Positions 1 through 5,110 of a stretch of DNA of 5,110 nt are shown piece by piece. The notes below the pieces were generated by a model, which was not told the origin of the DNA, did not search any database, and saw only the letters and a list, made by a program, of their open reading frames with translations. Position 1 is the first letter of the stretch. Every line of letters starts with the position of its first letter. The DNA is taken from assembly GCA_018985225.1 (NCBI GenBank), contig JADGIF010000690.1:1-5110 (forward strand), in the 5' to 3' direction. The stretch comes from Amoeboradix gromovi X-113. Lineage: Eukaryota; Fungi; Sanchytriomycota. Position numbers and translations under genes: made by a program.

Positions 1-1
1 T

Positions 2-187
2 TTATTTTCCTTTTATACTCGTCAACTCCGCAACTAGCTGAATGTCCACTCGCCTCTTAAATCCATAAAGTAATAAACTTGAAATAGTGTTCAAGTTGTT
101 ACAGAAAGTTAGTCCAGTTTTTATATTTGATGTCCCATATGGATTTAAAAGGAATTTAGGATTCCGCGAGAAATGGTTTGCAGCCAT
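2..187 (-). CDS. Possible small hypothetical protein (61 aa)
   Basis: ATG-initiated ORF, divergent from the 274 gene. Its TAA lies inside an AATAAA (plus 1-6 tttatt), as at other gene ends here. No recognisable domain. Confidence 0.25.
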   Translation of the reverse strand: MAANHFSRNPKFLLNPYGTSNIKTGLTFCNNLNTISSLLLYGFKRRVDIQLVAELTSIKGK

Positions 188-273
188 TAGAAGTAGCTGA
201 ATGTTATGTCAAAACTAATTACGTATTGAGATATTGAAATGTGTTCAAAATGACCTTTTCCTTTATTTAAAAC

Positions 274-621
274 ATGGTGGATTACTCAAATTTTGATGAT
301 ATAAAAAACTTAGTTCTCATGCTGCTTATTGGAATGGCTGTTATTTGTCTAATATGCGTATGCGGAATATGCGGTTACATGAGAACTCACAAACATATTC
401 ATCAAGGACTCGAAAGAAAAGAAAGAAGCACTGATAATTTGGTTGAGACAATAGAAGACCCAATTTCGAATTCAGACTCTCCTTCTGAAAATATAAGAGA
501 TGAAGGTCCAAACTACTACAGGCCTACAAGTAAACCTGTGAAGTCTGCACACCCGAATCTGGAAAACACGACTCAAGAAACCAGTCTCAGGGAAAAATAT
601 CTTTCCCAAAGAACTATGTGA
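274..621 (+). CDS. Hypothetical single-pass membrane protein (115 aa)
   Basis: Hydrophobic, Cys-rich segment LVLMLLIGMAVICLICVCGICGY, then a basic/His juxtamembrane stretch and a S/E/N/P-rich disordered tail. AATAAA at 623-628 directly follows the TGA. Confidence 0.6.
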   Translation: MVDYSNFDDIKNLVLMLLIGMAVICLICVCGICGYMRTHKHIHQGLERKERSTDNLVETIEDPISNSDSPSENIRDEGPNYYRPTSKPVKSAHPNLENTTQETSLREKYLSQRTM

Positions 622-672
622 TAATAAACTTCTTAATTAAAATTAAAGTTAACGGTTTCAAAACAACTTTTC

Positions 673-1479
673 ATGATCTGGAATACTATAATGTTTGTCG
701 GTGAAAAAAGTTCTGGTAAAACGTCCATTTTAAACTTTTTGTTGGACAAGGATGACCCAATACTACCCTCTCAATCTGTAGAATATCAATATATCAAAAA
801 GAAAGATTTCATCAGTCAAAACACAAGTAGCGAGTTGATAGTAGAACTGTATACTTGTGAATACGAAGTTACGGAAATGCTTGTTCAACAATCTAGGACC
901 TATATTATTGTGTTGGTAATTGATTTAAGCAGCAACATCGATTTTACAAATGTCAAGTTACTTAAAGACCAGTTTCCCGAATTAGAGTACTTGGTAATTG
1001 GTACAAAGTTGGATGAGTATTCTAACATGAAGAAAGAAGACCAGAAGCTAATCATGTCTATTTTTCAATTGAGCTGCAAAAGTCTTAAAATTCCTTTTTT
1101 ATTTACAAGCATTAACCATCCTTTGCATCAAAAGTATACAAAAAATTATTTATTTTACAAAAGCGGGCTTGCTAACTCTCCACCAGATACTGACTTCGAG
1201 GATTTCAAACCTGTACTAGAAATTGCTGAATTTACAGCAAAACAAGCTAAGAGTCTCGAACAATTGCAATCTAAGGTGAAAATTGAGAACAATAATGAGC
1301 ATACTGTAATACTTCTTGAACCTGAGGCTGATGTGGACTCATATTGCTTAAGAGCTCAAAACCGATTGTCAATTTTGCTTGAAGAAGATAAGAAGGAATT
1401 CCGAGACAGAATTGAGGATCTGAGCAAGGACAGCCAGTATTCCAAAAAATGGGAGGACATATTTGCATTGATGAACTGA
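673..1479 (+). CDS. DYNC2LI1: Cytoplasmic dynein-2 light intermediate chain (retrograde IFT dynein subunit), divergent
   Basis: P-loop FVGEKSSGKTS followed by LDKDDP..SVEYQY, RTYIIVLVIDLS, LVIGTKLD, FLFTS, EADVD and SKKWEDI. These are collinear with recalled DYNC2LI1 motifs (FIGSKNGGKTT, LDRDEP..ALEYTY, RTFSLVLVLDLS, VIIGSKYD, LMFTS, ENEVD, SKSWKQI). AATAAA at 1484-1489. Confidence 0.8.
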   Translation: MIWNTIMFVGEKSSGKTSILNFLLDKDDPILPSQSVEYQYIKKKDFISQNTSSELIVELYTCEYEVTEMLVQQSRTYIIVLVIDLSSNIDFTNVKLLKDQFPELEYLVIGTKLDEYSNMKKEDQKLIMSIFQLSCKSLKIPFLFTSINHPLHQKYTKNYLFYKSGLANSPPDTDFEDFKPVLEIAEFTAKQAKSLEQLQSKVKIENNNEHTVILLEPEADVDSYCLRAQNRLSILLEEDKKEFRDRIEDLSKDSQYSKKWEDIFALMN

Positions 1480-1491
1480 TGAAAATAAATT

Positions 1492-1638
1492 TTATTTTTG
1501 TAAAAAAGCCTCAATATCCTTCATTTGAAATGGTAGCTCGAATGAAAGATTAATGTTCTCTCGGAAATTTGTTCCAGATGACAAGACTTCGGAGATCCCA
1601 GCAGCTTTTTCTTCAAATAGAAAAATGCATTTGTCCAT
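1492..1638 (-). CDS. Possible 48-aa microprotein (MDKCIFLFEEK...EAFLQK)
   Basis: ATG at 1638 lies downstream of the U1 gene. The TAA overlaps an AATAAA (plus 1491-1496) and converges on DYNC2LI1. The longer 1782 start in the track falls inside U1. No homology recognised. Confidence 0.3.
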   Translation of the reverse strand: MDKCIFLFEEKAAGISEVLSSGTNFRENINLSFELPFQMKDIEAFLQK

Positions 1639-1658
1639 CTTGTTACAAATACATGAAA

Positions 1659-1700
1659 CTGTAGATAAAAGACGAGTGTTATAAGAGCCTGTAGATAAAA
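1659..1700. repeat. 12-bp direct repeat CTGTAGATAAAA (TTTTATCTACAG on minus), 30-nt period
   Basis: Exact copies at 1659-1670 and 1689-1700, just 3' of the U1 snRNA. Confidence 0.75.
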
Positions 1701-1704
1701 AATA

Positions 1705-1852
1705 GGGATGCCCATAGTTGGACGCACAAAAATTTAACGATGGAGACACCCGAAAGCGTTCCCAAAGACATCTGTTAGCCAAAGTGCTATGCTAACGTCA
1801 GTCTCCGGACTATTCTACTGTATGATAAGAACAGCCATCGCAAGGTAAGTAT
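1705..1852 (-). ncRNA. U1: U1 spliceosomal snRNA
   Basis: Minus strand begins ATACTTACCT (1852-1843). Helix H: GCGATG (1841-1836) pairs with CATCGT (1742-1737). SL1: GCTGTTCT/AGAATAGT with loop TATCATACAGT. SL2: GGAGAC..GTTAGC/GCTAAC..GTCTTT with a loop starting ATAGCAC. SL3 (1763-1743) is capped by TTCG. Sm site AAATTTTTG (1735-1727) is followed by a short 3' hairpin. The 3' end is approximate. Confidence 0.92.
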
Positions 1853-1943
1853 GAAGTGTTGTGTGAATTTTCAAGTAATGGAAGAATTGTGTGGGGTCCA
1901 ATCAAAAATGTAGATTTTGAGACAAAATGCCGTATTAGGTGTT

Positions 1944-2333
1944 TTATTCGATTCCTTTAGAAATATACCCTACGACGGGATATTTAGCGTCAAATTTAGC
2001 AATCCAATCTGCCAGTACTACAGCTTCTTTTTCATTTATAATATTACTGCAGTTATCAGGGTCTGTTTCCATTTTTGCCAATGCATAGGTTGCATCCCGC
2101 CCGGCCATTTTACTGTAAGGCCCGCCAGTGCCGTAAAACGATTTTCCTGCTGTCACATCATACACTTTTTCCTTTACTGCAATATAAATTCTTTCATTTT
2201 TGTATTTTCCAAGCTCTGCTATTGTGAAAGCCTTAGGGACTGAAGATTTTAATTCCACGGGCTTCTCTGTAAATCTTAAATATAACTTGATTATAAAATA
2301 AATCAGTGCTAATCCATAAGCGTACCACAGCAT
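1944..2333 (-). CDS. MAPR-family cytochrome b5-like heme/steroid-binding membrane protein (Dap1/PGRMC-like)
   Basis: N-terminal TM helix, then FTIAEL..Y, IYIAVKEKVYDVTAGKSFYGTGGPYSKMAGRDATYALA and the C-terminal W..KF..KYPVVGYI, all diagnostic of the family. The stop overlaps an AATAAA (plus 1943-1948). Confidence 0.93.
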   Translation of the reverse strand: MLWYAYGLALIYFIIKLYLRFTEKPVELKSSVPKAFTIAELGKYKNERIYIAVKEKVYDVTAGKSFYGTGGPYSKMAGRDATYALAKMETDPDNCSNIINEKEAVVLADWIAKFDAKYPVVGYISKGIE

Positions 2334-2378
2334 TCTTTACGGGGTTGAATCATTTTTGTGACTTTTTGACATCTCAAA

Positions 2379-3050
2379 ATGTTTTTTATTTTAGTCGGCG
2401 CAGCCTTGTATGGCAAGCTAATGAACTCATATACCCTTTATGTAAGTCTCTGTCTTCTAAATGTAAGCAAAGTTGTTGATATGCTAATTGTTCATGTTTC
2501 TATATTATTTTGTGTGAGTCTCGACACCAGTCATTACGTTGAAAAAAGCTTTGATTCCGAACATCCTGAGATTGAGCATGAAATCTACCATGTTTATGTA
2601 ACCATTCTTGTTTGCATTTTAAGCGTCTATCAAGCCAAGCCAGTGGAGTTGCAATTCATGAATATGAGTTTTCAGCAACCTAAATTAATTGCTTCATTAA
2701 TTAGTATTGCCCACATCATGGCTGTTGTGTTGGACGAAAGTAGTGTGTTTATCCTGGTGTTGGGATTAATGGGCTATACCAGCTTTAACATTCTGGTTAA
2801 AATATTTGATGTTTTATTAAATCGAATACATAGCTTTCATCCTATTCATGATCAGATACAACATCAAATTCAAGTATTCACAGGTAAGTATCACTGCAAT
2901 GTTCGTATATTCAAAATAATTAGATCTCACATTGACAAGGTTTTAGTAGTTTTAAGTGTAGATCAGTTTATTCCAGAATATCAGCAGTTCTTTAATAAAT
3001 TTATCAAAGTAGGTGACGTACAGTTGGAATTTGACGTTATACAGGAATAA
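2379..3050 (+). CDS. Multi-pass membrane protein, possibly a highly divergent cation diffusion facilitator (ZnT6/Zrg17-like)
   Basis: 223-aa ORF with several hydrophobic segments and a soluble C-terminal domain of about 75 aa. EKSFDSEHPEIEH and KIFDVLLNR loosely resemble CDF ERFLEQPEIH and ..ILLQ. The gene itself is likely real (AATAAA at 3046-3051 and 3058-3063), but the family call is weak. Confidence 0.55.
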   Translation: MFFILVGAALYGKLMNSYTLYVSLCLLNVSKVVDMLIVHVSILFCVSLDTSHYVEKSFDSEHPEIEHEIYHVYVTILVCILSVYQAKPVELQFMNMSFQQPKLIASLISIAHIMAVVLDESSVFILVLGLMGYTSFNILVKIFDVLLNRIHSFHPIHDQIQHQIQVFTGKYHCNVRIFKIIRSHIDKVLVVLSVDQFIPEYQQFFNKFIKVGDVQLEFDVIQE

Positions 3051-3072
3051 ACTAATTAATAAAAGATTTATT
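3046..3072. terminator. Convergent polyadenylation signals
   Basis: AATAAA on plus at 3046-3051 and 3058-3063, and on minus at 3072-3067, around the 30-bp gap between convergent stops. Confidence 0.5.
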
Positions 3073-3080
3073 TGTCAATT

Positions 3081-4414
3081 TTATCTCAAATCTCCATTTA
3101 GCAAATCACTTAATTCATCTTCAAGAGGTTTTGACAAGTCATTGAATAGCATATCAGCAGTTTGTTCAGTTTTAGCGTCTGCAATATGACTCCATTCATC
3201 CTGGGTGCTTGGTTTATCTTTAGACTCTATAGCCGGTGCTGTTGTATCAAATGGCTTTGTTTTAGCTGCAGACAAAGTATGAGATCTAACAGGTTGGGGT
3301 ACTGCTGGCTGGGTGGTTTTGCTAACATCCGTGGCACTTTTGACAGCCTTGACAATTGGAGGGGATTCTTTTTTTGGAACAGAAGCAGCCGAAGTAGTCA
3401 TTTTGTTTCCGTTAGTAACAATTGATGGAGCTGATGTAATGCTTTCCTTTTTGTTGCCCAAAGGGAGTGCCGGAGTAATAGATGGATTGTGAGACTTATT
3501 TGGATAGGAAACAGTTTCAATTGGTTCCATCTTGATTCCTTCTTGTATTTGCACTTTTGTCTTCACGGTATCACTGATATTTTCATGGTTTTGTTGAATG
3601 GTTTTAGTTAGCTGTTCAGTAGGATCTGCTATTTTGTTTTCAGCTGCAGAAGTCTTTTGAGGGACCGATAATTCAACTGACTGCTCCTGCACGTAGTTTG
3701 CCGGCATATCTGAGCTTTCAGTTTGCTGCTGCAGTAAAGGCTCGTTTTCGTCAGAATTCTGAAGTAATTCATCAAAGTTCGGTTCTTCTTCCACTAACCT
3801 ATGAAGTAAGCCGTAGCCTACATCCGCACCTAAACAACCCTGGCCACCCCATTCATAGTTAGGTTGCACATTCACGAGTCTGGTGGAGTCAGACTTGGGA
3901 TCATAAACATATATTTGACATGGTTTTTTCGAGTCGGCACAATCTTTAACGTGTTGGTAGAATCCATATTCTTCATCTAAATGAAAAGAAAAATACCATA
4001 ATGACCATCTGGGCTCCCGAGTATGTACGTGTTCGATTCCAGCTTAGCGAAGTAGGCTGGACTATCTTCTACAACTTCTAATATATGCCAGATAAGCAAG
4101 TGGGCCTTATCGAAGCTAGCCAACCTAATATTGCATCCTAATAAACCATCTTTATCATCTCGCCAAATTCGAGGGATAATGACTTTCCGAACTACGCTTA
4201 AAGACCGAGAGTTATATACGACGATTGTTAGAGGTTGCTGCTGAGATATCAATTGGAGCAACTGAGTGGCATTCTCTTTTGTAATAAACTGATTATTTAT
4301 CTTTATAATAAAATCAAGATATGGTGTAAGCTGGGCGTCTTGTGCAGGGCTAGTTGGTAGCACATTAAGAATTTGAAATCCTTTCAAAGATTCAACGCTT
4401 GGGGTGTTGCCCAT
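3081..4414 (-). CDS. GRH1: GRASP55/65 family Golgi reassembly stacking protein; two exons, 4414-3997 and 3976-3081, 437 aa
   Basis: MGNTPS myristoylation-type start. PDZ1: GFQILNVLPTSPA..LTPYLDFI..VYNS..GLLGCNIR. PDZ2: WHILEVVEDSPA..YILGSPDGHY/DEEYGFY..IYVYDPKSDSTRLVNVQPNYEWGGQGCLGADVGYGLLHRL. A S/P/T-rich tail follows. Splicing out 3977-3996 joins the two track ORFs in frame (418+896=1314 nt). Confidence 0.95.
3977..3996 (-). other. 20-nt phase-1 spliceosomal intron
   Basis: G|GTATTTTTCTTTTCATTTAG|AT. It has GT-AG ends, is pyrimidine-rich and contains the in-frame TAG. Removing it restores GRASP PDZ2. Confidence 0.9.
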
Positions 4415-4448
4415 TTGTAAAATTTGTTTGTTTCTAAAATAAAATTAA

Positions 4449-5110
4449 TGTAAAAGATTGGATATTGAAAGTAAGAGTAAACAAAAACTAGTGAATGAGC
4501 CTGAGATAGTGTCTGGTTCCAGAAGATCATCTAGCAGCTAAGAGAAGCTACAGGAATATAGATGGGACAAAGCGGATTATAAAATTCAGAAGTTCAATGT
4601 TACCACATAGTACCCTTGTGATGCAATCGCGGACCGAGATGTGGATGCGTATAATAAAAACTTCAAGAGGATAAAAATTCGATTGAACAATGTAGATAGC
4701 TCGATTGATTTCTTGAATAAATCATTTATTGCGAATTTGCTTGGATTTTTATATAATTTCAAGACTTTTCCAACAGCTTAAATACTCGATGTTCTTAATT
4801 TTCGCAAGTGGTAAATGGAATCAATGGATGTAATCCTAAATATGTCAAATCTAAAGAAATAACTAGTAGTTACAGCATACATTCATCAACACTGAGGAAC
4901 TGATCCAAAAGTGGAACAATTAGATGTCTTTCGACGCCAGAAAAGAGATATTTGTACAGTTTATTCAAGGAACGCTTGAAGTTCAAGTGTAAGCAAAGAG
5001 GAAAGACGCTAGTTGAATGTAATGAAGCATTTACTAGTCAAACATGTACAAGGTGTGGTACTCTAAAGAAAACCAATTTAGAAGTCTACACTTGTGATAA
5101 CTGTCATTTG
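4449..5110 (+). pseudogene. Degenerate Fanzor (eukaryotic TnpB, Fanzor2/IS607-like) RNA-guided nuclease remnant; continues beyond the window
   Basis: The open frame 4904-5110 reads SKSGTIRCLSTPEKRYLYSLFKERLKFKCKQRGKTLVECNEAFTSQTCTRCGTLKKTNLEVYTCDNCHL, matching the F+xRLxxK, ExxTSxTCxxCG and YxCxxC TnpB/Fanzor C-terminal signature. Upstream has stops in all frames (TGA at 4901). The left boundary is uncertain. Confidence 0.8.

Follow-up and report, generated by a model that had tools for sequence, protein, structure and literature searches.

A contig-end Fanzor2 fragment in Amoeboradix gromovi as part of an abundant family of probable non-autonomous IS607 elements

The window, the whole 5,110-nucleotide stretch of DNA analyzed here from the alga-parasitic fungus Amoeboradix gromovi, closes with the 5′-most 70% (positions 4698–5110) of a non-autonomous IS607/Fanzor2 element ~590 bp long, which the contig end truncates. 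We consider it nearly certain that this element is a deletion derivative of an IS607/Fanzor2 transposon, and very probable that it is best explained overall as dead and non-autonomous, derived from an IS607-family transposon that in its full form carried TnpA and Fanzor2. The window copy encodes no functional protein and is a passive fossil; the significance of the finding lies in the family as a whole.

Anatomy and affiliation of the window copy

The element can be divided into the following features:

4694–4697, plus strand: target/TAM position 5′ of the left end, from 45 sampled copies and the window copy
4698–4807, plus strand: AG core (4698–4699) and left end (CTCGATT from 4700); homology to other copies begins at 4698
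4808–4962, plus strand: remnant of the IS607 TnpA serine transposase, reduced to ~50 codons of the N-terminal HTH, from TnpA comparisons
4963–4969, plus strand: internal deletion joint between TnpA and Fanzor2, in frame in the window's subfamily, from comparison with the longer copy C385
4964–5110, plus strand: Fanzor2 C-terminal remnant with Glu 5024 and a C4 zinc finger (5045–5056 and 5093–5104), from profiles and relatives

The first-pass annotation had described positions 4904–5110 as a start-less open frame encoding the C-terminus of a Fanzor2/TnpB-type nuclease. The window sequence bears out the open frame, and the Glu codon (5024–5026), the CxxC (5045–5056), the 12-residue spacer and the CDNC (5093–5104) all lie exactly where they had been placed. 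Profile searches likewise agree that the zinc-finger region is of the TnpB/Fanzor type: Pfam PF07282 (TnpB/Cas12f TNB) matches residues 18–68 of the frame above its curated cut-off (E = 2.9e-12), and NCBIfam guided_TnpB matches with E = 1.5e-8. The first ~20 codons (4904–4962), which had also been assigned to Fanzor, instead continue the HTH of an IS607 TnpA. Window positions 4838–4963 are 50% identical to residues 5–46 of an intact IS607 TnpA, with one TGA (E = 1e-6); a stop-free sister copy gives E = 1e-11 against the intact protein, and the remnant has a weak MerR match in profile searches. The left end occupies 110 bp before the TnpA start, where the start codon is now GTG (4808), and a Trp codon further on is now TGA (4901–4903), which is why the frame appears to lack a start. 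The window copy is a deletion derivative without RuvC-I and with a transposase HTH in front, and the reading of it as a nuclease C-terminus does not hold.

The Fanzor2 remnant, 61% identical over 49 aa to the intact relative P0122, stops a few codons short of the DRD motif. Extension past 5110 yielded nothing: contig C978 has the same extent as the window, and the unitigs are interrupted within the repeat. Because the contig ends there, the DRD is visible only in sister copies, which run on through the zinc finger to the DRD and a conserved non-coding end; the RuvC-III motif and structured 3′ end expected downstream are thus present in other copies. The longer copy C385, 94% identical over the common 3′ part, and the intact relative both keep the RuvC-I DPG motif that is deleted in the window copy. 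Fanzor2 sequence back to RuvC-I is retained at three loci, and a second subfamily has a different joint that is out of frame.

The Fanzor2/pro-Fanzor group is defined by the DPG motif, the relocated Glu and association with an IS607 TnpA (PMC10711439, PMC3627910). The best PDB match of C385 is ApmFz2 (9B0L, E = 1.5e-10), in agreement with the proposed IS607-derived Fanzor2 type, and its Glu, the same residue as Glu 5024 of the window, aligns with ApmFz2 E467, the relocated catalytic residue of that enzyme (PMC11832414); the proposal that Glu 5024 is the relocated RuvC-II residue is supported by this alignment. The TnpA association is represented by the HTH remnant in the window and by a full Resolvase-plus-HTH TnpA in the intact relative. 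Judged by its sequence, the family is of the Fanzor2 type, and the window copy departs from it in RuvC-I by deletion. The hallmarks of Fanzor1 were not found: there are no terminal inverted repeats or target-site duplications, TnpA is present, a pseudoknot is predicted, and the PDB matches include no Fanzor1.

The nearest intact relative, P0122, is a 1887-bp metagenomic element encoding TnpA and an overlapping 579-aa Fanzor2. It is 63% identical over RuvC and is placed as sister (support 100/94) in a tree of 48 sequences chosen by similarity to C385, with P0122 near-duplicates left out and without named Fanzor1 and IS607 TnpB references. P0122 has CAG before its left end and GAGGAG at its right end; two further relatives have TCAG in front and TAGGAG at the end, with ends assigned by motif from single copies. 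These flanks predict a CAG TAM and an AG core for a small Fanzor2 clade that includes the intact elements P0122, P0002, P0142 and P0001 and has compact scaffolds of 105–125 nt. Scans of IMG/VR found no relatives, and the metagenome scan recovered only the relative already known. In L083 (from 1271 onward), the intact metagenomic relative sits at a CAG site inside the TnpA of its own diverged copy, a nested insertion compatible with the same AG core.

The remainder of the window carries several other features. A GRASP55/65 gene (3081–4414, minus strand) is split across two ORFs; by eye, a putative GT–AG intron of only 20 or 29 nt ends at 3977. A 268-aa ORF (673–1479, plus strand) has an N-terminal match to the dynein-2 light intermediate chain (DYNC2LI1-like, E = 4.8e-6) and a weak C-terminal match to the GINS subunit SLD5 (E = 0.007), possibly reflecting two abutting genes, a fusion, or chance. 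A U1 snRNA-like sequence (1695–1852, minus strand) spans the full model with E = 1.3e-6 and a score under the gathering threshold, and has the canonical start for 5′ splice-site pairing. Another abundant repeat has one of its ends at positions 1–141 (minus strand). It gave 798 candidates with identities of up to 97%, and its complete copies of 300–450 bp have terminal inverted repeats of about 30 bp; it is a MITE of another family, probably of the DDE type. The terminal sequence of this repeat recurs at L084:408–439, on a contig from a different assembly that is gene-dense and virus-like, where it matches the window at 30/32 positions and another copy at 31/32 and sits some 12 bp upstream of the related Fanzor2 element. 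This pairing hints that the two element types may share a host or a viral shuttle.

Copies, ends and target site of the family

Searches of the A. gromovi assembly (10.55 Mb, 1319 contigs) revealed a highly repetitive family. The published genome comprises 10.5 Mb in 1167 contigs with 36% GC, from DNA amplified from sporangia (PMC8371127), and the assembly analyzed here derives from this whole-genome-amplified DNA. A DNA search gave 704 candidates, in which homology always begins at window position 4698 and never further upstream, and a peptide search gave 615. A right-end 19-mer (≤2 mismatches) occurs at 573 places and a left-end 28-mer (≤3 mismatches) at 407, with no matches for either reversed control. 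From the right-end matches, we place the copy number at ≥573, or roughly 3.2% of the assembly at ~590 bp per copy. Summed read depth over the element is more than 100 times that of a 27x unitig, although the unitig run probably represents the source reads of the assembly and so is not independent. A sample of 32–45 copies was picked for likeness to the window; its members share 92% identity with their consensus and 86% with one another, and the window copy is 91% identical.

The ends of the element are sharp and the outer flanks unrelated across about 45 sampled copies. The left end is preceded by RCAG (R in 41/45, C in 42/45, A in 41/45 and G in 43/45); the window copy has ATAG at 4696–4699, with T in place of the motif's C. 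The right end closes with GAGG-AG. Terminal inverted repeats and target-site duplications are absent from the sampled copies, which instead have an AG dinucleotide at both ends. Such a pattern is expected where a serine recombinase exchanges a 2-bp core, as with GG in IS607, where the same dinucleotide is found at both ends and in the target (PMC6188088). The motif CTCGAT, a putative TnpA-binding site, lies at the left end, again 85 bp inside, and near the right end. Rfam searches of a full copy and the intact relative gave no group I intron match at E ≤ 0.1 that would indicate an IStron, and the left end is only 110 bp long. In its sequence, the family appears to share with IS607 both the lack of inverted repeats and duplications and an identical 2-bp core. 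Several hundred insertions with one target motif provide strong genomic evidence for IS607 transposition in eukaryotic nuclei, and we think it likely that the family spread in the nucleus by means of a serine transposase.

The proposal of an undescribed family with intact copies elsewhere was borne out in part. The family is multi-copy, and a literature search found no paper pairing "Fanzor" with "sanchytri" (Sanchytriomycota is the host phylum). Searches of the genome for TnpA, TnpB and the Fanzor N-half found no intact TnpA plus Fanzor2 of the window's family, giving only broken or contig-end pieces (C46, C385, C477, C565 and C977); C477, C565 and C977, as well as C818 and C1, were left out of the sequence reading. 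On C46, an open Fanzor2 N-half like that of the window's family reaches the contig end at RuvC-I, and a broken TnpA lies next to it. An intact parent could be concealed by repeat collapse in the assembly.

The genome carries several IS607 lineages. The only stop-free Fanzor2 ORF found in these searches belongs to a different, single-copy IS607 element, C542 (L063:1423–3438, minus strand), which encodes a 671-aa Fanzor2 with all three catalytic motifs (D, E, D). This Fanzor2 is identical to an A. gromovi protein in EukProt. In C542, the TnpA is interrupted by a stop at the HTH Trp codon that is also a stop in the window copy; ACAG-CT lies upstream of the element, and its compact predicted omega-RNA has the loop CTTA and terminal TAAG. 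In C459, the TnpA is free of stops and the Fanzor2 contains one. C542 and C459 both branch separately from the window's family in the tree. Decayed copies of a distant IS607–Fanzor2 lineage are also present (C459, C578, C392, C690, C787 and C689).

Right-end RNA, mosaic copies and alternative readings

The right end of the family, which lies past 5110 and outside the window copy, resembles an omega-RNA of ~120 nt. For the last 105–125 nt of four related elements, the predicted structure is a 5′ hairpin with three further stems, and sequence likeness among the four right ends is confined to the hairpin and the terminus. The hairpin loop and terminus could pair as CCTC/GAGG in the family and the intact relative and as CCTA/TAGG in the other two, so that the partners covary; we liken this pairing to the pseudoknot described for TnpB and Fanzor2. 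Fold z-scores are −1.8 for the family consensus and −2.9 for the intact relative. RNAalifold gave a weak consensus on the decayed copies, and structure was therefore assessed across relatives; no Rfam family matches the right-end RNA, and a search of sequencing runs found the stretch in no RNA run. Prediction and comparison together point to a right-end omega-RNA with a terminal pseudoknot, as in Fanzor2.

Sequence variation among the copies carries two signals. Private variants, found in one or two copies, have an omega of about 0.91 in both coding remnants and are neutral. Variants present in ≥4 copies are mostly synonymous (omega 0.19 in the Fanzor part and 0.39 in TnpA) and therefore would have arisen in functional sources. 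Shared variants do not nest, and linkage between them is low: mean r2, at 0.26 for sites up to 10 bp apart, is 0.04–0.09 at larger distances, and all four allele pairs occur in ≥2 copies each at about 70% of site pairs (32–45 sampled copies). In 300 clonal simulations that allowed homoplasy generously, this share never exceeded 14% and r2 never fell below 0.26. The linkage pattern holds when transversions are taken by themselves, and many of the same variants are found in the second deletion subfamily. Linkage already breaks down at 11–30 bp, within a single read, which argues against mis-assembly. On these sequence patterns, repeated exchange among dispersed copies appears to be the simplest reading of the mosaics. 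Fanzor-driven repair is a possible but somewhat unlikely cause, and general gene conversion would do as well, the linkage analysis having covered this one repeat family. The shuffling of variants among dispersed copies provides a footprint for testing whether Fanzor cutting leads to repair-based copying in a eukaryote.

The right-end RNAs could also be viewed as a guide array kept by the host, its omega-RNAs and their hundreds of distinct flanks directing a surviving Fanzor2, for example that of C542. Shared variants are sparser in the omega-RNA part (0–10% of sites against 17–19% elsewhere), a stop-free Fanzor2 with D, E and D exists, and SpuFz1 ghost omega-RNAs can act in trans (PMC10432273). 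Private mutations, however, are as frequent in the omega-RNA part as elsewhere, and thus there is no selection after insertion; C542, moreover, is of another lineage with a different predicted pseudoknot. We regard a guide array as very unlikely. It is highly improbable that selection maintains the in-frame HTH and zinc-finger mini-ORF (about 145 aa) as a product, for example an end-binding repressor. The joint is in frame, stop-free copies exist and the shared variants are largely synonymous, but this synonymous excess is accounted for by descent from functional full-length sources, and private changes are neutral. A 29-bp frameshifting deletion is present in 14 of the 29 scored copies, a second abundant subfamily is joined out of frame, and the window copy lacks a start and contains a stop.

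The closest intact relatives reside on short or gene-dense, virus-like metagenomic contigs, and the genome was amplified by MDA (PMC8371127), both of which would suit an origin from a contaminant, from endogenous viral DNA or from chimeras made during amplification, in place of nuclear transposition. Against this, a unitig at 27x, the single-copy depth, spans 119–4727 and joins host genes to the left end of the element, in keeping with the eukaryotic surroundings noted earlier. The neighbors are GRASP55/65, cytochrome b5-type, DYNC2LI1-like and U1-like genes, and hundreds of unrelated flanks have one target motif in common. Such an origin is extremely unlikely for the copies as they stand, while a viral origin of the founder element is plausible. 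Finally, the idea that the frame encodes the C-terminal end of a Fanzor2 gene both intact and active, its 5′ part having been missed, as its open reading with intact E, CxxC and CxxC might suggest, is refuted by the left end at 4698, some 260 bp off, and the TnpA match, with the HTH and its stop at 4901 lying upstream, RuvC-I, WED and REC absent, and the same or a similar deletion in hundreds of copies; we give it practically no credence.

Under the preferred reading, that of non-autonomous derivatives of an IS607/Fanzor2 transposon, the full form, about 1.9 kb long in P0122, would have encoded TnpA and an overlapping Fanzor2. By analogy with IS607, TnpA from a full-length copy may have bound the ends of a mini-element in trans, excised it and inserted it at RCAG in the nucleus by exchange of the 2-bp AG core. 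As in TnpB and Fanzor systems, the right end and its flank would yield an omega-RNA with a flank-derived guide that, with Fanzor2 supplied in trans, could cut the empty donor site at the TAM CAG. Homologous repair from a sister or ectopic copy would then restore the element at the donor site, and repair that aborts or switches template to ectopic copies could produce both deletions at short microhomologies and mosaics. The full nuclear life cycle, with AG-core insertions, Fanzor2-guided cutting of donor sites, a pool of copies connected by template switching and a surviving Fanzor2 that may load the omega-RNAs, is speculative and on balance improbable. If true, a bacterial-type serine-transposase element ran its complete cycle in a fungal nucleus.

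Comparison with known systems

The IS607-encoded ApmFz2 (ApmFNuc) of A. polyphaga mimivirus (PDB 9B0L; PMC11832414, PMC10530073) resembles the A. gromovi family in the DPG RuvC-I (of the longer members), the relocated Glu, the C4 zinc finger, the DRD, an upstream serine TnpA and a right-end omega-RNA with a terminal pseudoknot, here predicted. ApmFz2 occurs as three viral copies that are nearly intact, and it has a GGG TAM and a scaffold of over 200 nt, whereas the A. gromovi family consists of hundreds of deleted nuclear copies with RCAG and an AG core and a scaffold of about 120 nt. Bacterial IS607/IS1535 elements (PMC6188088) share the serine transposase with an N-terminal HTH, the lack of target duplication and an identical dinucleotide at the ends and target, but have a GG core; the AG core, the eukaryotic nucleus and the miniature non-autonomous copies distinguish A. 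gromovi.

Fanzor ghost loci have been described for Spu-1 in Spizellomyces punctatus, where 134 loci measure about 550 nt each, and also in G. theta, in N. lovaniensis and in M. mercenaria (PMC10432273). Like the A. gromovi copies, Spu-1 ghosts are non-coding derivatives of similar size in a zoosporic fungus that keep the ends, TAM and omega-RNA. Spu-1, however, is a Fanzor1 with 30-nt inverted repeats, while the A. gromovi family is of the IS607/Fanzor2 type, lacks terminal inverted repeats, keeps coding remnants, and has over four times more copies in a genome under half the size. A census reported a maximum of 122 Fanzor copies per genome, counted as proteins (PMC10530073).

A 2013 survey described sequences of the IS607 TnpA/TnpB type with eukaryotic genes on either side; it saw nothing to indicate that IS607 had transposed in eukaryotes and left the question open (PMC3673617). 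The present family bears on whether IS607 transposes in eukaryotic nuclei, as its ≥573 insertions with one target motif point to transposition. Elements of this kind are already known; what is new in A. gromovi is the host phylum, along with the AG/CAG specificity, the number of copies and the mosaicism.
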